Assembly (NCBI GenBank): GCA_020184695.1
Contig: JAANOX010000192.1
Span: 1-64,000, forward strand
Direction of reading: 5' to 3'
DNA length: 64,000 nt
From: Histomonas meleagridis 2922-C6/04-290x
Lineage: Eukaryota; Protista; Parabasalia
Shown in pieces: positions 23,942 to 41,417 of the stretch. Both the position numbers and the translations under genes were made by a program. Within the stretch, counting starts at the first letter, position 1; each line of letters begins with the position of its first letter. Under the pieces are notes generated by a model, which saw only the letters and a program-made list of their open reading frames with translations, was not told the DNA's origin and did no database searches.

Positions 23942-26900
23942 TTGAACTTCCACCCAACTGTTACACCATTATTCCAAGACTGGCTCCACTCAATAGATAA
24001 TATTTTCCAATGCCCTGAAGATTATCCACCAAAAGGAATTCAATTTCCAAATCCCACACAAACTCAAAATTGTCTTTTAACATTTTCATTAAACACTATC
24101 AATCAAGAACAAGATGGTACTATTTGCTTTTGGAAAGAAATTTCAGACACATCAGCAGATTTAAGGAAAACAATAACAAATATGGCACATAAATATTATA
24201 CAGATTTATTTCCTCACATACACCTACGCACATTATTATCACCTTCACAAGGATGGCTCACACTATTTTTTGATCAAGCAAAAATCCGTACACGAGGGAA
24301 TCGTGCTTGTATTCATTATTTTTCAAACGGTGATGCACAAAAATCCGATATTGAAGAATTCGAACGTATTTTTAGTAATATCGATACTCTCAATTGCACA
24401 GCCTTTATCTTTGATTTTGATAATTGTGATGAATTGTATGATCTATTTCAAAATCTTCCACCCGAAACAGATACTTTTGCTTTTTTTGCTTGTTCTAAAG
24501 GTCAAAAGCTTGTGCGAACACCCGATTTACCAAATGATCTTTTTACTTCTTGTATGATAACAACGCCAAGGACTGTTCTTCTTTGGCATTCTTGGCATTA
24601 TTATTGCTTTAAGAACGGACCCCTTAAGCCACTGTCTCCTCTCTTCGTAGAGGAAGAAGAACTTGATTCTGAAGAAGCGAAACAAATCTTTTCACATGTC
24701 AAAACCGTCATCAACAGCACCGTTGAATCGATTGCGATCCAAGTTCTTGATCATGAGACTTTCCTACGCTTTTTTCGTACAGACCAAGTGATTTGTCAAC
24801 TAACAATCAACTTTATAATGGCTTGTAGAGTTCTTTCTTTTTTTAATATAACTCCAGTTTCATTTCCAAGTATTCCAAACTCAATAATACAACATAAACT
24901 TTGGCAAACTCTCGAATTAAGACTTGACGCAGAACTTTATCAACTACAACAACAAGAAATTCCAAATAATATTTCATATACTCATTTCATGGAACAAATT
25001 TTACTTACTATAAGAACTGCAATTGACATTGTATCACCTGAGAATCCATTTGTTCCACAAATATCTTATTTTCCATCAATATTATCTCCGGAATTTCCAC
25101 AACAAATTGTCTCTGAGGCATGTTCCATTTTAGCATTATATCTTGATATATCAACCGAAGCAATTCGGATGGTGCTTTGTTTTCCAATCATAAAACCATT
25201 ATTTCGAATCTTAATAGAAAAACCATTTAATGATTTTGATTATAATCCATTATTTTTTTGTTTATGCAAATTAATGGCATATATCAAAACCTCTAAAGAT
25301 ATTCATGTTGAAAATATCCAGTTATTTTTCGATACAAATATTTTTCCTTTACTTTCATCACAAAATTCAAAGCTCGTTGTCACTTTTTGCGTTTTATTCC
25401 TAAACGGCTCCACGGCGCACGTTAACGAATTTGTTAAATCTAATTGGCGACCGTTTGTTCTAACATTACTTAAAGACAAAGATAAAGACACAAGAATATG
25501 GGCATTATTATTGATATCAATACTTTCACAAAACATAAAATCTGATTTTGAGTCCGATAATATTTTTCAAGAGATATGTCAATTAATTAATTATAATTTA
25601 CCTGAAGAACGTTTAGTATCTATATATTGTTTAACGCAATTTTTAGTAGATTATGAATCTACTTCATTACAAGAGAACATTCTTAATCTTATCTATAACC
25701 AAAAAGAAGACTATTGTTATTTAATACGCTTACAAATCATTTCCACAATTTCGTATTACTTCCATAAACATTTTGAGTTATTCTTCACGCCGACGACCGA
25801 AGTCAGTCAACAACTTCATAAACTAATTGTATTATATCTTAATGATTCACATCCACTTGTTATCAATCGCATGGAAAAACTTATTGAGGCAATATCCACT
25901 TATGAACTTGACGCCATCATTCAGCCTACGTATGTCATCGAGTTCTATTATTCATTACTACTTAAGTCGATCAAACATATATTAATTGAAGCGATTGATT
26001 TACCATATTCATTAACTATAAAAACTAATGAAACTAAAGAAAGAAATAATGAAATTAAACACATGAATAATAATAACAATAATAATAATAACAATAACTT
26101 AAAGTTAACATCGATTTATACACATTCATATGATATTACATCGAATTTCATTACATTGCCAATGAATTCCGAATTTATCTTCGGAGATTCGATGGGTTAT
26201 ATTAACATTAACAATTGGAACAATAACAAAATTTTATTACAATATAAAACAGAACAAAAACTTCCAATTAATTATATTAAATATATAAATAACTTTTCAT
26301 ATCCATTAATATTTACAACTAATTTCAACAATGTTTTATCAAGTTATTCAATTAATAATAATTATGAATTAAAGTTAATGTGTTCATTTGATTTACCAAA
26401 AACAAAAAATAATTTAAAATTCGATGTCGAACAAAATTATGGAAATTTATTGTTTTATGAACCGTTAAATTCAAATTTAATGTTATTCGATTTAAGATCA
26501 ATGAAATTATTACAAGAAATTGAACTCGACGGAACGTTAATTCATTCGGCTTATTGTATTAATTATAGTAATTCATTGATCGGAATTTGTACTGAAAATT
26601 TCTATTTGTTGGATTTGAGAACTAAAGAAAAAGTGATTTCCAAAACTTTACGTGATAAACCTTTCGATTTTAGGGTGGTCGATCCGTTGGAGCCATCGTT
26701 CCATATTTGTATGGAAAATGGAAAAATTAATACTTTCGATATTAGAAGTATAGAGGTGGCAAGAAAGAAATTCGTCCCATCGTTCCAAAATAAAGTCGAT
26801 ATAATGGCTTTCGACTCACATCATAATAAATGTAATTGCGTCATCGGTCATAATTCGGGGTTCGCTTGTATCGACTTGTTAAACCAAAAACAAATGAACT

Positions 26901-27031
26901 TCCCAAACGTAATGAAAAGTAAACAAAGTATTAACGCTGTGGAACAATGTCTGTTCCATTCGTCGGCTTTGTCATTAAATGTATTGAATGGAAAAAGAGA
27001 AATAATTCTTCTCGAGGAACACGAAATTTAG
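23942..27031 (+). CDS. Raptor/KOG1-like protein (RNC domain, HEAT repeats, degenerate WD40)
   Basis: PDLPNDLFTSCMITTP matches the Raptor N-terminal domain motif. DTRIWALLL and ERLVSIYCL HEAT segments and a beta-rich C-terminus follow. No ATG in the first 80 codons. Confidence 0.8.
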   Translation: MNFHPTVTPLFQDWLHSIDNIFQCPEDYPPKGIQFPNPTQTQNCLLTFSLNTINQEQDGTICFWKEISDTSADLRKTITNMAHKYYTDLFPHIHLRTLLSPSQGWLTLFFDQAKIRTRGNRACIHYFSNGDAQKSDIEEFERIFSNIDTLNCTAFIFDFDNCDELYDLFQNLPPETDTFAFFACSKGQKLVRTPDLPNDLFTSCMITTPRTVLLWHSWHYYCFKNGPLKPLSPLFVEEEELDSEEAKQIFSHVKTVINSTVESIAIQVLDHETFLRFFRTDQVICQLTINFIMACRVLSFFNITPVSFPSIPNSIIQHKLWQTLELRLDAELYQLQQQEIPNNISYTHFMEQILLTIRTAIDIVSPENPFVPQISYFPSILSPEFPQQIVSEACSILALYLDISTEAIRMVLCFPIIKPLFRILIEKPFNDFDYNPLFFCLCKLMAYIKTSKDIHVENIQLFFDTNIFPLLSSQNSKLVVTFCVLFLNGSTAHVNEFVKSNWRPFVLTLLKDKDKDTRIWALLLISILSQNIKSDFESDNIFQEICQLINYNLPEERLVSIYCLTQFLVDYESTSLQENILNLIYNQKEDYCYLIRLQIISTISYYFHKHFELFFTPTTEVSQQLHKLIVLYLNDSHPLVINRMEKLIEAISTYELDAIIQPTYVIEFYYSLLLKSIKHILIEAIDLPYSLTIKTNETKERNNEIKHMNNNNNNNNNNNLKLTSIYTHSYDITSNFITLPMNSEFIFGDSMGYININNWNNNKILLQYKTEQKLPINYIKYINNFSYPLIFTTNFNNVLSSYSINNNYELKLMCSFDLPKTKNNLKFDVEQNYGNLLFYEPLNSNLMLFDLRSMKLLQEIELDGTLIHSAYCINYSNSLIGICTENFYLLDLRTKEKVISKTLRDKPFDFRVVDPLEPSFHICMENGKINTFDIRSIEVARKKFVPSFQNKVDIMAFDSHHNKCNCVIGHNSGFACIDLLNQKQMNFPNVMKSKQSINAVEQCLFHSSALSLNVLNGKREIILLEEHEI

Positions 27032-27547
27032 TTTTAGTAAATGTTTATATTAGCGAAATAATGTGTCAAATTGATTTTGTATTATATGCAAAATATTTGT
27101 TCTTGTGGAAATATTTTTACTAAATTATTAGATCACGCCAAACATTCAATTTAAATCTTCAAGTAAATATAATATAGTTACATAAAATCAGACTTGCATT
27201 GCGATTACATCTTCTAAATATTGAATTGAATAACCACAAAAAATATGAATCGTTTTTGCAATTTGTGCTTGGAAACTTCGATTTTAAAATATATATAATT
27301 CTATATTAAAAATAAACTTACATTTTTTCATTCTTTGGGAATGTGAATTTATATATCATACTTCGAACAAACACTTTTGAGTTTTTTAAATATTTACCAC
27401 ATCTGGCAAAAATCCACCATAAAAGAAACTCTGAATAAAATAAATGAACCAAAACTATCGGCAAAGGTTCGTTTGGTCCAAATTTTAATACTAACAAAAA
27501 ATAAAAAAAGCAAAGAGTTGAACTCTTTGCAATTTAAGAAAATTTGT

Positions 27548-27667
27548 TCGGGGGAGCGAGCAAAACTCACCACCCAAGATTAAAGGCAAAGCTTTGTGAA
27601 GTGCAGTTGCACTTTAACCTCCCATAACCTCCCTGCTGACGAGGCTACAGCAAACCAGATAAGTGAT
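27548..27667 (-). ncRNA. Candidate U1 spliceosomal snRNA
   Basis: 49% GC island in an AT-rich convergent intergenic region. Minus strand reads ACUUAUCUGG (U1 5' end ACUUACCUGG with one change), a 7-bp hairpin UUUGCUG/CAGCAGG, a long hairpin with loop containing ACUGCACUUC (U1A site AUUGCACUCC), Sm-like AAUCUUGG and a terminal GC-rich hairpin. Stem-loop III and a clear U1-70K loop are not evident. Confidence 0.6.
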
Positions 27668-27852
27668 CCAAAGCTTTCTGAAATTTAACTTTGTTGACAT
27701 TATTAATTTTTACTGCACAAAAATAAAAAAGTGCGAAAACTGAAAATTGCACAGAAAAGTGAAACTTGAACATTGAAAAAAAATTAAAACAAATTCGACG
27801 AAATACAAATTGTTTAACATAAAAAAAATAGTTTTAGGTCTAACATATTCCT

Positions 27853-29196
27853 CTAATTTTCATTTAGATGATAAACATTTGAAATTGATGTAATAAAATT
27901 TTGCAACATTTCATTTGTTTGAGCTAATTCTGTTATTTCACCTATTAGTTCAATCGGAATAATATCATCTCTGTTATTATCACATATGAAATTTGATATT
28001 CTCATGAAAGTTTTTTCCATCATTTGATATTCTTTTGAGTTTTGGTTATCCAAGTCATCCACAAAATTACTCATTTTATATATCAACAATGGAATCATTA
28101 TATGTTCCAATTGATCAGTATTTGCATAATGAATCATAGCACATGACAATTTCAAAAATTTCATTAAAACAACAAATGAAAACTCATCAACTTTTTGGAT
28201 TAATTCATTAAACAAATCTAACTGAAGAATATAATCAATTGCTAATTCTTTTGTTTGTTTCACATAACAAAAAATCATAATACATAAATATTTATATGTT
28301 TTCATTGTTAGAAATGGTATTTTAGGTTTTACAATTTCTAAAATTTTTGTTTCCCTTACAAAAAAATTGATATCATTACAACATGCACAAACACATTTAG
28401 AAAAATGTATTGCAATTTGCATAAGTTTTTGCGCTTCATTAACATGAGCAAATAATTGTGTAATGTTTTGATTTTGCATTAAAATCGAAACAATAGAAAT
28501 TTGATCAGCACAAAAACAAATTAAAAGTTTAAAACAAAGAAGTTGAAAATGTATATCAAGAGAAGGAAGTATATAAATTAAGTTATTAAAAAAAGGTATC
28601 ATTTGGATTAATAGTATTTTGTAACTGCAAAGTGAAAAACATAAATCAAAAAATGAATCGCAAAGATTTGATGAATGTAAATATGTAATTAAAAAATTGT
28701 TAAAATTTTGATATTCTCGTGGAGTTGTATTAAAAAGACGAAGGAATTCATTGACATACGAAATATGGATCTTAATTATTAAAGAAACAGATTCAATTGC
28801 ATCTGGATTTGGAAAAAATTTATATAGAGTTTGAATCGTGCCTTTAGGAAATTGTGGCTCAAAGTCATCTGGAATCTTTTTTAGGCTAATATTTATTAGG
28901 GTAATATATAGAATTATGATATCATCTGGGGTTGTTGGATCATTTATTATATCAATTATCATTTGAAGATGTTCAGGCGTATAATCCATTGAGCAGCTAA
29001 TTAGAATCTCAAAACAATTTTGAATTGCTTTCGTATCATTTGAATTGATGAAAATATTATTTAAAGATTGAATTAGTTCTGGAGGAGCGCTTGTGCAAAA
29101 ACTATCAAAAACATTGTTTTCATTACATGACCGCCCTTTTATTAATGAATTTTTTCTCAATAAATCCAACTTTTGAGCTTTACCATCTCCTTTCAT
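27853..29196 (-). CDS. Hypothetical helical (ARM-like) protein
   Basis: 447-aa open ORF with an amphipathic helical pattern. Confidence 0.65.
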   Translation of the reverse strand: MKGDGKAQKLDLLRKNSLIKGRSCNENNVFDSFCTSAPPELIQSLNNIFINSNDTKAIQNCFEILISCSMDYTPEHLQMIIDIINDPTTPDDIIILYITLINISLKKIPDDFEPQFPKGTIQTLYKFFPNPDAIESVSLIIKIHISYVNEFLRLFNTTPREYQNFNNFLITYLHSSNLCDSFFDLCFSLCSYKILLIQMIPFFNNLIYILPSLDIHFQLLCFKLLICFCADQISIVSILMQNQNITQLFAHVNEAQKLMQIAIHFSKCVCACCNDINFFVRETKILEIVKPKIPFLTMKTYKYLCIMIFCYVKQTKELAIDYILQLDLFNELIQKVDEFSFVVLMKFLKLSCAMIHYANTDQLEHIMIPLLIYKMSNFVDDLDNQNSKEYQMMEKTFMRISNFICDNNRDDIIPIELIGEITELAQTNEMLQNFITSISNVYHLNEN

Positions 29197-29329
29197 TGAA
29201 ACCGTTAATTAAACCTGAATAAGAAATGCCACATTCGATCGTTTTTGCCTCAATATTGAAGGAAGCTGCTCATTTTACAGAGTTTATTTGGTCGGATTTT
29301 AGAGGCGGACGTTAGAGGTTTATTTTTAG

Positions 29330-30119: not shown

Positions 30120-32003
30120 GTGTTTGGTATCACAAGTCATATTACCATCGATAATAAAATTTCAAAAAATATTCAGTTATTGCAGCTTATAGAGCAAACA
30201 ATATTTAATTTAAATAATAATAATATTTCAGCATCTGTTGAATCTTTATCAAATAATTATTCAAAAGAATTTCCTTATTCATTTAGTTTTATTATTTATT
30301 CAATTATATACTCATGTTTTACATCAAAGGGTTTTTATAAAATATATTTTGAGTTTTTAGAAAAACTTGAAACTATAGAAATGAAGAATTTCAATAACAC
30401 AAATAACAAAATAACAGAAATTTTTGCAAATTGGTTTTTTCTTCGTAAGCAAGAAGCGAATTACCTTCTTGAAAAGATTGAAAGGCAAAAGAACATTATA
30501 TTTTGTGCATCTTCTGAAAAGTGATGAAATAAATAAATATTTTTTTGATAAATGGAATGTTAAATTAATTGATTATGCAGCATTTTCCGGATCGATTAAA
30601 TGTTTCAGATGTTTGTTAATGAATGGTGCCAATGTAGAAAACACAGGTAAATATGCAGTTGCAGGTAGAAATGAAGAAATCATTCATTTATGTGAACGAA
30701 ATCATTCAATATTTGAAGATGTATCTGAGACAGCAATTGAATTCCATCAAAATGATGTATTTAAATATATTTATGAGAATAAATTAAAAAAAATTGATGA
30801 TATGCAGAAGTTAGGAGAAAAATGTATAATGTTTTATAATTTTGAAATTTTATCATTTCTGAGAGAAAATAGTTTGAAAATCGATAAGAACCTTATCATT
30901 AATTCAATTGAGAGCGGAAATATTTTTGTTCTGCAATATTTTTACCAAATAAATCCTATTCAAGCACGCAACATTCACACAAATGAAATTGTTGCAATCA
31001 AAACAATTAAACTGAAGCATCTCAATAGAACCGAAAAATCAAAAGCCCTCAAAGAAGCTCAGCTTCTTTCCAAACTCCACCATCCAAATATTGTTTCCTA
31101 TAAAGAATCATGGACAAAAAACGAGAAACTTTATATTGTCATGGAGTACATTGAAGGTGGTGATTTAGGCAAAGTCATCAAAAACGCCATGGAACTCTTT
31201 TTCGTGAATCAGAAGTTCTCCATTATTTTGTCCAACTTGTTTCCGTCATTGATTATATTCATTCCAATCATATTCTTCATCGTGATCTTAAACCCGACAA
31301 CATTTTTGTAACCAAGACCAACATGATCAAACTTGGAGATTTTGGGGTAGCTCGATCACTTGACAATACATTTGACATGGCCAATACAGTCATTGGGACA
31401 CCATATTACTTATCCCCAGAGATCTGGGAAGGCAAGCCATATGATTCTCATTCTGATATTTATAGTTTGGGTGTTATTCTTTATGAACTATGCGCACTTA
31501 AAAAACCATATGAAGCGCCTAATGCATTAGCGCTTTGTTCCATTGTAACTAAAGGGGAACACGAGGACATCCCGAACATATATTCTGATGACCTTAAAAA
31601 CCTTGTTAACCGAATGTTATCACTTGATCCACATCAACGTCCAACAGCACGCGAAATAAAACAAATGAAAATAATTACAAAAGGCGCAATTAACATTATC
31701 AACAAGAACCAAACAATAATATCGAAGCAAATTAATTCGCCAAAGCGAAAAAGATTATTGAACTTAAACTTAATGAATAATACAAATGCTAATGAACAAG
31801 AAAATATTCCATTTAATGACTTCATCGACGAAGATGATGAAAACGAAGAAGAAGAAATGGTAATCGAAGACGACTTCATTGAAGATGACTTCATTAAGGA
31901 AGAAGAGGAGGAAGAAGAGGAAATGGACGAGGAGCAGCTGTTCTTGTTGCAGGAAACGTCAAACGCTTTGAGGCAGTCAATCATTATCAGTCCAATGAAA
32001 TAG
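30120..32003 (+). pseudogene. Chimeric locus: deleted DUF3447-type ankyrin-family N-domain fused to a NEK-type kinase lacking its Gly loop; frameshifted
   Basis: LIDYAAFSGSIKCF block, then ARNIHTNEIVAIK, EAQLLSKLHHPNIV. Adding one base at about 31189 restores [23 protein letters not shown] further frameshift and deletion lie near 30500. Confidence 0.75.
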
Positions 32004-32761: not shown

Positions 32762-34710
32762 ATGTCAGCTATAGGTATTGATTTAGGTACAACATACAGT
32801 TGTGTCGGTGTTTTCAGACATAATCGTGTTGATATTATAGCAAATGATATGGGTAATCGTACAACACCGTCTTATGTTGCATTTACAGAAGATGAAAGAC
32901 TTGTTGGTGATGCTGCGAAGAACCAAGCAGCCATGAATCCAACAAACACAGTATTTGATGCCAAGCGTATGATTGGCCGTAAGTTTAGTGATCCAGTTGT
33001 TCAAAAAGATATGCAACATTGGCCATTCAAAGTTGTTCGCGGTGAAGCAGATCGTCCAAGAATTCCAAGTCCAATGGAAAGGTGAAACAAAACAATTTTT
33101 ATCCAGAAGAAATCTCAGCTATGGTGTTAGGTAAAAATGAAAGAAATTGCCGAAAGTCAACTTACAGACAAAGTCAAAGATGCAGTTATTACAGTTCCAG
33201 CATATTTCAATGATGGTCAACGTCAAGCCACAAAAAGATGCCGGTGTCATAGCCGGATTAAATGTATTACGTATTATTAATGAGCCAACAGCCGCCGCAA
33301 TTGCATTTTGGTCTTAACGAAAAATCCGATAAAGAGCGTCATGTTCTTATTTTCGATCTTGGCGGCGGTACATTTGATGTTTCATTACTTGATATCGATG
33401 GCGGCATGTTCGAAGTGCGTGCCACAGCAGGCGATACACATCTTGGCGGCGAAGACTTTGATAATCGTATGGTTAATTACTTTGCAGATCGATTCCAGAA
33501 GAAGTTCAAATGCGATTTAAGACAATCGCCACGTGCACTCCGTACATTACGCACAGCATGCGAACGAGCTAAGCGAACATTATCCACAGCCACATCCGCA
33601 TCAATTGTTTGTGATTCATTATATGAAGGCCACGACTTCATGGATAACATTTCACGTGCAATGTTCGAGAACTTAAATGACGAATTATTCAGATCGACGA
33701 TGACACCAGTTGCACAAGTATTAAGGGATGCAAATATGTCGAAGTCAGATGTCACTGATATAGTTTTAGTCGGAGGTTCATCACGTATTCCACGTGTCCA
33801 ACAATTGCTACAAGACTTCTTCAATGGCAAGCAGCCATGCCGTGGCGTTGATCCGGATGAAGCAGTTGCATATGGCGCAGCAGTCCAAGCAGCAATTATC
33901 AAAGGCGATACATCAGATACAGTGAAAGATATTTTGTTGTTAGATGTTGCACCACTTTCATTAGGTATCGAAACAGCTGGCGGAATGATGACAGTGCTCA
34001 TTCCACGTAACACAACAATTCCAGCGAAGAAGTCAAATGTCTTCACGACATTCTCAGATAATCAGCCCGCAGTAACAATCAAAGTTTATGAAGGAGAACG
34101 TTCGCGAACATGCGACAACAACTTACTCGGTACATTCGATTTAACAGGCATTCCGCCAGCACCACGCGGCGTACCACAGATTGAAGTTACATTCGATGTT
34201 AACGCGGATGGTATTATGAACGTTTCAGCACAAGATAAGTCGACAGGTAACGTGAAGAAGATTACGATTAAGAATGAGAAAGGACGTCTTTCACAAGCAG
34301 ATATCGACAAAATGGTTGCAGACGCAGAGAAGTACAAAGCACAAGATGAAGAAGTACGAAAGAAAGTCGAAGCGAAGAACGCACTCGAAGGATACTGCTT
34401 CGGCGTACGCAACTCATTAAATCAAGAACAATTCGCTAACGCATTGTCACAATCAGATAAGGACACAATCAACAGAGAAATCAACGACACGCTCGCATGG
34501 ATCGAGTCTAACCAAGACGCAGACGTCACTACAATCGAAGCAAAGCAGAAGGAGCTCGAAGGCAAACTAATGCCAATTATGCAAGCGGCTTATCAACATG
34601 CAGCAGGCGGCGCACAAGGCGGAATGCCAGGCGCGAACATGCAAGGAGGAAGTGGACCATCAGCAAATAGTGGACATTCATCAGGACCACGTGTTGAAGA
34701 AGTCGATTAA
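32762..34710 (+). CDS. HSP70: Cytosolic Hsp70 (five single-base homopolymer insertions at 33065-33309 in this sequence)
   Basis: [29 protein letters not shown] and C-terminal EEVD. Removing 5 extra bases gives a 647-aa ORF. Confidence 0.95.
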
Positions 34711-39390: not shown

Positions 39391-40239
39391 ATGGCGGGTT
39401 GTTCAAATTGTTCCCGCGCTGGTTATTACATCAAAATGGGTCTTCCTGTACAGCGTTTCCTGAAATTTCCTGCACGAAAAGAAGAAAGGCCATCAGGAAA
39501 GTCTGATTTAAGTTTGCTTTGGGAAAGGTCTCTTGCACCTTCACCAATATCATCACCAATCCCAAAAATTTCAGGAACTTCTAGAGCAGTATCAAATGAT
39601 ATTTTTGCTCTACTGGCAGCAACAAAAAGAGAAGATACCCCAAGAAAGAAATTGTTTTGTCCACAAACATTAATTGTTCCACCAACGCCAAAGAAAATGC
39701 CAGCTCCTGTTTTAGAATTACTTTACAAAAGTGTCTCTATAATGACAAATAGAAGGTTTGATGTTCCAGAAAAAATTTCTCAAAAAATAACATATTCATT
39801 TTTTGGCGGTGAATACCAAGAAGCTGCATGGAATAACTTCAAAACAATTTTGAATTATGCTGAGTGTTCAGTAGTTTCGACACCTACCATGATTTTTTTA
39901 TTTTGTGATGGAGTTGTAAAAGGAAAAGCAATAACAGGAACTGCTCTTAAAAGATTAGAAAGTGCTTCTGACAATCTCCCACTAATTCCTATGGAAGCTG
40001 CGATTAGTATTATTGATGATATTTTTTTGAAAGAAAGATTGAATCTTTTTTCAACAAAAGAATTCCATTATAGTACTGTCATGCCGGTATCTATATCTTA
40101 CTCTGAGTACCACACATCAAATGGTAAGAAATTTAGGACGATTGTTACAGGTCATATTTTCCCATTTGAAATCGATATTATAAATGAAGAGAAAAATAAT
40201 TATGAATCTTTCACAATCCAATCATCTGCGTTTCAATAA
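39391..40239 (+). CDS. Hypothetical protein
   Basis: 282-aa ATG ORF. No domain recognised. Confidence 0.7.
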   Translation: MAGCSNCSRAGYYIKMGLPVQRFLKFPARKEERPSGKSDLSLLWERSLAPSPISSPIPKISGTSRAVSNDIFALLAATKREDTPRKKLFCPQTLIVPPTPKKMPAPVLELLYKSVSIMTNRRFDVPEKISQKITYSFFGGEYQEAAWNNFKTILNYAECSVVSTPTMIFLFCDGVVKGKAITGTALKRLESASDNLPLIPMEAAISIIDDIFLKERLNLFSTKEFHYSTVMPVSISYSEYHTSNGKKFRTIVTGHIFPFEIDIINEEKNNYESFTIQSSAFQ

Positions 40240-40828
40240 ATTGTTTTCGACTGTATAGTATTCATTTGATTCAAAACTGTTGTATGAGTTTTTTAAGCTT
40301 ATAAACCTCCAAAGATAAAGCTAAATGATGTATGAAATATGTTAAAATGAAATATATTTAATGTTTAAAAAAAATCCATCTTTAAACGAAAAAAAAAATT
40401 ATGATTTCTATATAATCTAAGTTTTCATGAAGAGTTAAATTTTTAATAATGATATCATAATATTTAATAATGGTTTTTGGTATTTTCTAACAAACTTCAG
40501 TTGATCAACCTATATATTGTGAAGAACATATTGAGAAATACACATATCTTTAGAAACGCAACATTTCCTTTAAATAAAGATAAATATTTTAGTTGTTGAG
40601 AAATTTTATGTTTGAAAAAGTTTGAGATGGTCATTTAATGTATTTACTCGTTTGAAATTGCGCTTTTGTTAATGCTTTTGTGTAAAATATCTCATAGGAA
40701 TTTGAAATCAATGTTATAATATGTGCAGTACGAACATTATAAAAGCATTTGATCTCAATGGGTTTTTATTATAAAAATATATACACATAAAACTTTTACG
40801 TACATAAATGCAGAACACAAATTTTTGG

Positions 40829-41417
40829 CACAGAAAATGGACACCTCCACAAAGAACCTCAGCGATGAAGGAGGCTTCACGCCATGTCTTGCGATCAAAG
40901 ACGCCATCTAAGGATATCCGCAGCGTCTGAGTTCTCTGACGAAGAAACTAAACTCTGCGAAGTGGAGATAGTTGTCAAGAAGTCGGCGACGAAATGATCT
41001 AATATTGGGCTAACCTCATAGCGAAGCACCCATGCATTGTCTCAATCGAAGATGGTCTTCAAGAAAATGACTATATACATTGGAAAGAACTCAACGCAAC
41101 ACTCGTCAAAAAGGTGCAACTCGTCGGCGATGACCTATACACATCAAACCCAAAGACAATCGAAGGAAAATATTGCAACGCGTTGTTACTTAAGGTAAAC
41201 CAAATCTGTACTATCTCAGATGTTATGTATGCGGCGAAGCTCATGAAATTGACGCCGGACAAAACATAGTATTAAATCATAAATCGCTGATATTGCCGTA
41301 TTGGTGTACAACAAATTAATACCGGATCTACAGCATGTGGAGAATGTATTGAGAAGTACAAATATCTTCTTCAAATTCTACGAATATCTTAAGGAACACG
41401 ATATTCTCGAGGAATAA
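40829..41417 (+). pseudogene. ENO: Enolase pseudogene (C-terminal half with deletions, stops and frameshifts)
   Basis: KNLSDEGGFTPCL, IVSIEDGL, VQLVGDDLYTSN, NALLLKVNQI and C-terminal EYLKEHDILEE*, with internal TAA codons. Confidence 0.9.

Follow-up and report, generated by a model that had tools for sequence, protein, structure and literature searches.

In the duplex between the U1 snRNA and a 5′ splice site, C8 of the RNA pairs with the +1 G of the intron; a U at this position can wobble-pair with the G of GU introns or form an A-U pair where the intron starts with A. In the same phylum as Histomonas meleagridis, the U1 snRNA of Trichomonas vaginalis, described by Simoes-Barbosa et al. (2008, RNA 14:1617), is reportedly conserved in structure and is said to be transcribed by Pol II and to lack a cap. 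The T. vaginalis RNA is stated to keep ACUUAC (Roy and Bowser, bioRxiv 10.1101/2022.06.08.495308) and has UGCAUAU in the U1A loop, where the eukaryotic consensus is UGCACUC (Hudson et al. 2012, PMC3510501); the validated introns of this species are GT-AG in 63 out of 63 cases (PMC12316389). In the metamonad Giardia lamblia, a divergent U1 missed by standard searches begins directly with ACUUAC, keeps C8, and lacks stem-loop IV and the U1-70K site, while the +1 base of the introns is G, A, or C (PMC3510501). Strict pairing at +1 is therefore not required in this related, intron-poor lineage. Altered recognition hexamers are known from Entamoeba and Mastigamoeba, whose U1 sequences ACAAAC and ACGUAC differ at the bases that read +3/+4 and restore Watson-Crick pairing to the consensus splice site of the species (Roy and Bowser 2022, bioRxiv 10.1101/2022.06.08.495308). 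For H. meleagridis, no snRNA is described in the literature we searched: the genome paper, which gives a GC content of 28.7%, makes no mention of snRNAs (PMC8529796), and the search otherwise returned only unrelated chicken miRNA papers. The U1 recognition sequence is among the most conserved RNA motifs of eukaryotes, and a U at the position that reads +1 would extend the few known changes at U1 5′ ends (Entamoeba, Mastigamoeba, and Physarum). The candidate described here also bears on how 5′ splice sites are defined in intron-poor protists.

We analyzed a 64-kb stretch of H. meleagridis DNA, referred to below as the window. Its DUF3447/ankyrin protein has paralogues in H. meleagridis, and the next named relatives belong to Tritrichomonas. 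The candidate U1 element lies on the minus strand, from 27664 down to about 27509, and corresponds to an RNA of about 158 nt (156-160 nt). It has 49-50% GC inside a spacer of 22-28% GC; the spacer is 820 nt long and separates two convergent genes:

23942-27031, plus strand: Raptor homologue (PF14538 in its relatives).
27853-29196, minus strand: 447-aa protein with no Pfam family.

No credible ORF overlapping the element was found. The original prediction had pointed to a GC island at 27548-27667, and its 49% GC was confirmed; the mean of the whole window is 28.3% (sd 7.5%). 120-nt windows of equal GC richness make up 0.4% of the window and lie mostly within coding genes. This 120-nt span covers the 5′ three quarters of the element as we now delimit it and misses the Sm-like site and stem-loop IV (27545-27510).

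Read 5′ to 3′ on the minus strand from window position 27667, the sequence runs AUC ACUUAUCUGG UUUG. The candidate 5′ start, ACUUAUCUGG, is the canonical U1 5′ end except for a C-to-U change at position 8 (window 27659), so that the U1-like 5′ end noticed at the outset holds up on the minus strand. At the DNA level, the reverse complement of 27655-27664 is ACTTATCTGG, with GGATC directly before it. The 64 kb contain this decamer once without mismatch; of the five copies with one mismatch, some are unrelated and the others fall in sense-strand ankyrin coding sequence. Two DNA runs contain all sampled 31-mers of 26000-29000, and the region is thus consistent with read data. The homopolymer frameshifts that the assembly carries elsewhere, in an HSP70 gene, are indels and not substitutions like the C8-to-U change.

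To compare the locus with known RNA families, we used a narrow Rfam scan of 27495-27672 (178 nt on 2 strands against 4227 families), a narrowing that loosens the Infernal filters. U1 (RF00003) was the top family, with 22.5 bits and E = 4e-4, and the alignment was global, placing model positions 1-166 on window 27509-27666 of the minus strand. The score is far below the gathering score of 69.5; scaled linearly to one family over the 43-Mb genome, by our own arithmetic and not by a tool, the E-value is about 0.02. A whole-window Rfam scan at gathering thresholds did not list U1, and a permissive scan of 27350-27850 (501 nt) gave ten chance matches with U1 absent, in both cases because the Infernal filters dropped it. 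The lack of a covariance-model match, which the original prediction had named as grounds for giving it up, was thus what routine scans appeared to show, and it was overturned when the proposed Infernal search with RF00003 was confined to the locus and matched over the full length. As controls, the other 50% GC island of the window (40790-41110) and a GC-rich decoy from a metagenome (L020), which starts with AUACUUAUCUGG, were put through the same permissive scan, and neither had a family match. Along the U1 alignment, the order is ACUUA-CUGG, helix H, stem-loops I-III, the return of helix H, CAAAUUUUCUUA against CAUAAUUUgUGg, and stem-loop IV. At the 5′ end, the consensus AUACUUACCUGG and the candidate show one difference, the C-to-U change at model position 8, placed with high posterior probability.

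The minimum free energy (MFE) fold of the 168-nt RNA 27664-27497 was computed with no U1 prior and reached -55 kcal/mol (z = -3.76), and none of 200 shuffled sequences folded as well. Nine free 5′ bases are followed by a 5-bp helix (GUUUG/CGAAC) that closes a junction of three branches; AAAUUUUCUUAAAUU, single-stranded over 15 nt, then leads to a 9-bp hairpin and U7. This is the architecture of U1, with its free 5′ arm, four-way junction, single-stranded AAAUUUUCU, and terminal hairpin, and the helices agree between the MFE fold and the structure of the RF00003 covariance model (CM). The parts of the candidate RNA, in 5′ to 3′ order, are as follows:

27656..27664, minus strand: single-stranded 5′ arm ACUUAUCUG for 5′ splice-site recognition, unpaired in the MFE fold.
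27651..27655, minus strand: 5′ strand of helix H, GUUUG, pairing with 27546-27550 and closing the four-way junction (MFE and CM).
27622..27650, minus strand: stem-loop I, with a 10-bp stem and the 9-nt loop GUCAGCAGG at 27632-27640 (MFE and CM).
27576..27621, minus strand: stem-loop II, with a 10-bp basal stem and a distal part containing ACUGCACUUC at 27598-27607 (MFE and CM).
27551..27575, minus strand: stem-loop III, 3 + 7 bp with several G-U pairs (MFE and CM).
27546..27550, minus strand: 3′ strand of helix H, CGAAC (MFE and CM).
27531..27545, minus strand: single strand with the Sm-like site AAUUUUCU (CM, and unpaired in the MFE fold).
27510..27530, minus strand: stem-loop IV, GCAAAGAGU UCA ACUCUUUGC, 9 bp (MFE and CM).
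27497..27509, minus strand: U7 A U5 run after stem-loop IV, likely the 3′ end or termination region.

The RNA probably ends in, or just before, the U-run at 27509-27503; at about 158 nt, it is slightly shorter than the 166 positions of the RF00003 model. Features in common with RF00003 U1 are the 5′ sequence ACUUA-CUGG, helix H, and stem-loops I-IV, together with a UGCACUU loop that belongs to stem-loop II and a single-stranded, U-rich stretch that precedes stem-loop IV. The 5′ arm of the candidate is identical to Rfam U1 positions 3-11 at eight of nine bases, C8 being the mismatch, and corresponds to the U1 5′ end ACUUACCUG that is complementary to 5′ splice sites; unlike the model, it probably starts with ACUUA, without the leading AU. 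The four-way junction, formed by helix H around stem-loops I, II, and III, is present in both the MFE and CM structures. A further difference lies in stem-loop I, where GUCAGCAGG occupies the site of the U1-70K loop and is a partial match (aligned as G-UCA--A-GG) that has UCA, A, and G in common with the consensus GAUCAaGAAG of the AUCACGAAG type. In stem-loop II, ACUGCACUUC takes the place of the U1A-binding loop AUUGCACUcc. The covariance model sets A-UGCACUU against the consensus CAUUGCACUu here, and the predicted U1A-type loop ACUGCACUU (27599-27607) agrees with AUUGCAC at six of seven positions. Stem-loop III is the weakest helix and has a low posterior probability in the CM alignment. 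For the Sm-like strand, the posterior probability of the alignment to the consensus CAUAAUUUgUGgUAG is high; compared with sites of the AAUUUGUGG type, the Sm-like AAAUUUUCUU is single-stranded and in the canonical position but is without the usual 3′ G.

Set beside the individual systems, the candidate has ACUUAU and UGCACUU, against the ACUUAC and UGCAUAU reported for T. vaginalis. It resembles the Giardia RNA in being a divergent metamonad U1 that standard searches miss, and differs from it in having a stem-loop IV (PMC3510501). With the Entamoeba and Mastigamoeba RNAs it has in common an intron-poor protist host and an altered base in the hexamer that recognizes the 5′ splice site; unlike theirs, the change in Histomonas is at the base that reads +1 and weakens pairing to GU introns.

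To gauge how often such an arrangement arises by chance, we scanned metagenome sequences for the motifs ACTTATCTGG, TGCACT, and AATTTT at U1-like spacing. The 59 hits (49 distinct sequences), none of which looked parabasalid, are in line with what chance should give by a rough estimate, between tens and about a hundred. The U1 topology of a free 5′ arm, a three-branch junction, and a terminal hairpin was found in one of the 49 distinct sequences, that of L005/L012, which Rfam identifies as a true U1 (108 bits), and in none of the 48 remaining motif-matched decoys. Five of the hits considered as U1 (L020, L006, L010, L040, and L044) were rejected by Rfam, in which L006, L040, and L020 were scanned, or by their fold. 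An AT-rich element, conserved over about 190 nt and starting with ACTTATCTGG, is common to L006, L010, L040, and L044; it occurs in two variants and is not U1.

Because of the CM alignment, the independent MFE fold, the 0 of 48 decoys, and the negative controls, we hold with good confidence that the element is a U1 homologue. More specifically, on the strength of sequence and structure modeling, 27664 to about 27509 on the minus strand is very likely a divergent U1 spliceosomal snRNA gene of H. meleagridis. The proposal that this is a U1 thus stands on an end-to-end top match to RF00003 and a U1 layout in the MFE fold, but with a score below the gathering threshold. It is probably a previously undescribed gene of a known family with one notable base change in the recognition sequence, and probably an ordinary housekeeping RNA gene in which a single base is of interest. 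Such an RNA would be expected to bind Sm proteins and U1-specific proteins and to recognize, by base pairing, the 5′ splice sites of the few GU-AG introns, with a G-U wobble presumably taking the place of the G(+1)-C8 pair.

We then considered how the locus might be transcribed. The initiator consensus of trichomonads, known from T. vaginalis, is TCA(+1)YW. TCACT at 27666-27662 matches this initiator, with A27664 as +1, in which case the RNA would start with ACUUAU at A27664, much as the Giardia RNA starts with ACUUAC (PMC3510501). TCAYW occurs at 0.8% of window positions, and no enrichment upstream of ORFs was evident in the small sample that this window offers, so the match counts as weak support. 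Four sequencing runs containing this DNA were guessed to be RNA runs, and the contigs of two of them (X3 and X4), plus two others, were aligned to the window. In X3 as well as X4, the contig on the Raptor side stops where stem-loop IV has its foot (27509). The contig of the 447-aa gene stops at 27794 or 27858. As the contigs of the neighboring mRNAs stop before the element (27509 and 27794), it lies outside the UTRs of both neighbors. The stretch 27510-27793 is uncovered by the contigs of these probable RNA runs, which are probably poly(A)-selected libraries; the gap fits a nonpolyadenylated small RNA lost from such libraries, and a silent locus fits equally.

The same coverage gap is what would be seen if the element were a variant or pseudogene copy of U1, silent or minor in the manner of U1 variant genes in animals and plants, with a working C8 U1 elsewhere in the genome. 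A precedent for such a copy comes from the plant-like metagenome U1 (L005 1284-1447 and L012 2612-2775), the 5′ AUACUUAUCUGG of which is identical to that of the candidate and includes the C8-to-U change. That RNA is, unlike the candidate, near-consensus in all other respects and GC-rich, and is presumably one of a multigene family, many U1 copies being expected there; its U8 indicates that such copies arise naturally as variants. A decaying copy is, however, difficult to reconcile with helices and protein-binding motifs that are all intact and free of signs of decay, or with a GC island that is sharply preserved within an AT-rich spacer. We therefore regard a variant copy as unlikely, although it is the strongest of the alternatives to a divergent U1 gene.

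A second alternative is that the element is no U1: its GC-rich structure could have arisen by chance, or it could encode a small RNA of another kind whose U1-like starting decamer is a coincidence. The covariance score below threshold would be in keeping with this, as would an element that is without a homologue and without evidence of expression; moreover, the U1-like 5′ end was the reason for choosing the locus, by eye, and such a choice makes the significance look greater than it is. Against these points, the CM match extends over the full length, the topology of the MFE fold matches independently, and the U1A-type loop, the Sm-like site, and stem-loop IV are all correctly placed. Neither the 48 motif-matched decoys, in their topology, nor the motif-matched and GC-matched controls, in the Rfam scan, resembled U1, and we consider a non-U1 origin very improbable. 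Support from synteny was also sought and not obtained: in a relative, the closest Raptor-bearing contig (L001) is without a U1-like 5′ end, and the downstream gene is unrelated.

For a divergent U1 gene, the simplest reading of U8 is a tolerated change, and in an intron-poor lineage, it would most likely have been close to neutral. The original prediction had also allowed that U8 might be a general trait of parabasalids; if T. vaginalis keeps ACUUAC, as Roy and Bowser state (bioRxiv 10.1101/2022.06.08.495308), it is not. U8 could also pair with a +1 A, and we found no evidence that such pairing is used. Intron motifs of the T. vaginalis type are absent from the window, which is without a validated intron. 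Two gene splits that might have been taken for introns, in an HSP70 gene and in a kinase gene, were rejected, both being frameshifts.

The original prediction further tied U8 to the inserts of the ankyrin arrays. The idea would be that U8 co-evolved with noncanonical introns: the ankyrin inserts of about 68 nt would be spliceosomal, and their +1 A or G would be read by U8. A further-reaching version would make the candidate the sole U1 of Histomonas, with a relaxed or altered reading of +1 that accepts intervening sequences starting with A or G, such as the fixed-length ankyrin inserts. If true, the +1-reading base of U1 would have co-evolved with non-GU introns of a new class, and this in a lineage regarded as nearly intron-free. 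Each of the two arrays has A/G-TTTGTTT after the coding sequence ...AAA GAT ATT T; the first base of the insert is thus A or G, and U pairs with both. A precedent also exists in Entamoeba, where the U1 sequence ACAAAC goes with GUUUGU (bioRxiv 10.1101/2022.06.08.495308).

The pairing itself does not bear this out. Between UUU|RUUUGU and the 5′ end of the candidate, five of nine positions pair (+1, +2, +5, and +6, with -3 as a wobble), and the longest run is 2. Of all 9-mers in the window, 23% equal or exceed this pairing, and runs of 2 or more are seen in 63%. A canonical C8 U1 pairs equally well with the GUUUGU copies. The exon bases -1 to -3 (UUU) do not form Watson-Crick pairs, and U5 and U6 are still U, which leaves +3 U and +4 U mismatched; these are exactly the bases that Entamoeba has altered. 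Nor, judging from Giardia, is a matching U1 base necessary, since its +1 varies among G, A, and C with a canonical U1 (PMC3510501). The boundaries of the inserts are putative, and a search for spliced ankyrin products with the first exon returned matches that are paralogues, so that no RNA evidence of insert removal was obtained. Copies of ACTTATCTGG that differ by one base within the ankyrin array were likewise rejected as a link to the inserts: ACA GCA CTT ATG TGG encodes TALMW, and these copies are identical, not complementary, to the U1 5′ end.

Comparison with a relative points the same way. A DNA metagenome scaffold from ENA (L061) reads into the inserts of its ankyrin gene, which occupy the same place but start differently, with AUGUAUUU and GUUUUUCA. 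The link between U8 and the ankyrin inserts is therefore unsupported, and we consider co-evolution of the two very improbable, as we do the version with U8 as the sole U1, reading A- and G-starting inserts. The candidate, as a divergent U1, does provide a concrete probe for whether the ankyrin inserts are spliceosomal. As to the arrays themselves, the proteins P0011, P0015, and P0022 from ENA contigs, among them L061 (1580-1932), are 40-49% identical and so come from a Histomonas relative; they share the architecture of the ankyrin genes. In these proteins and in L061, the inserts follow INxKD, and one insert of P0022 is in frame and translated (KIYFNDFIFQNNIWGFLKLFK).

Beyond the locus itself, a usable U1 sequence offers a seed for finding parabasalid snRNAs missed by standard Rfam scans, whose default filters hid this candidate.

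Several further features of the window were recorded. The contig of the Raptor gene in the probable RNA runs extends 478 nt beyond the stop codon (27032-27509), which could represent read-through, a transcript missing from the annotation, or a long 3′ UTR, and the hairpin at 27510-27530 may terminate transcription from either direction. The motif TAACGGTT lies just upstream of two start codons, at 1155-1195 (ORF 1195-2160) and at 29197-29237 (ORF 27853-29196), and presumably resembles the M3 promoter element of trichomonads. A second island of about 50% GC, at 40826-41100, lies between ORF 39391-40239 and the ankyrin array; it holds no ORF of at least 70 aa and gave no Rfam match even in a narrow permissive scan. 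The HSP70 gene mentioned above is cytosolic in type and occupies 32762-34710 on the plus strand (PF00012, E = 4.5e-157 for the last 482 aa). About five frames are used between 33060 and 33320, with breaks at A or T homopolymers that seem to be one base too long, and these breaks are either local assembly errors or the mark of a very young pseudogene, not introns. At 30424-32003 on the plus strand, a gene for a DUF3447 and protein-kinase protein has a frameshift near 31200-31310, after which HRDLKPDN...DFG continues in a second frame. Within this gene, and especially at 30600-30820, coverage by contigs of the probable RNA runs is unusual: it reaches 13,000-39,000x over 30425-30818, with hundreds of the contigs 90-95% alike, indicating a large and highly represented multicopy family.
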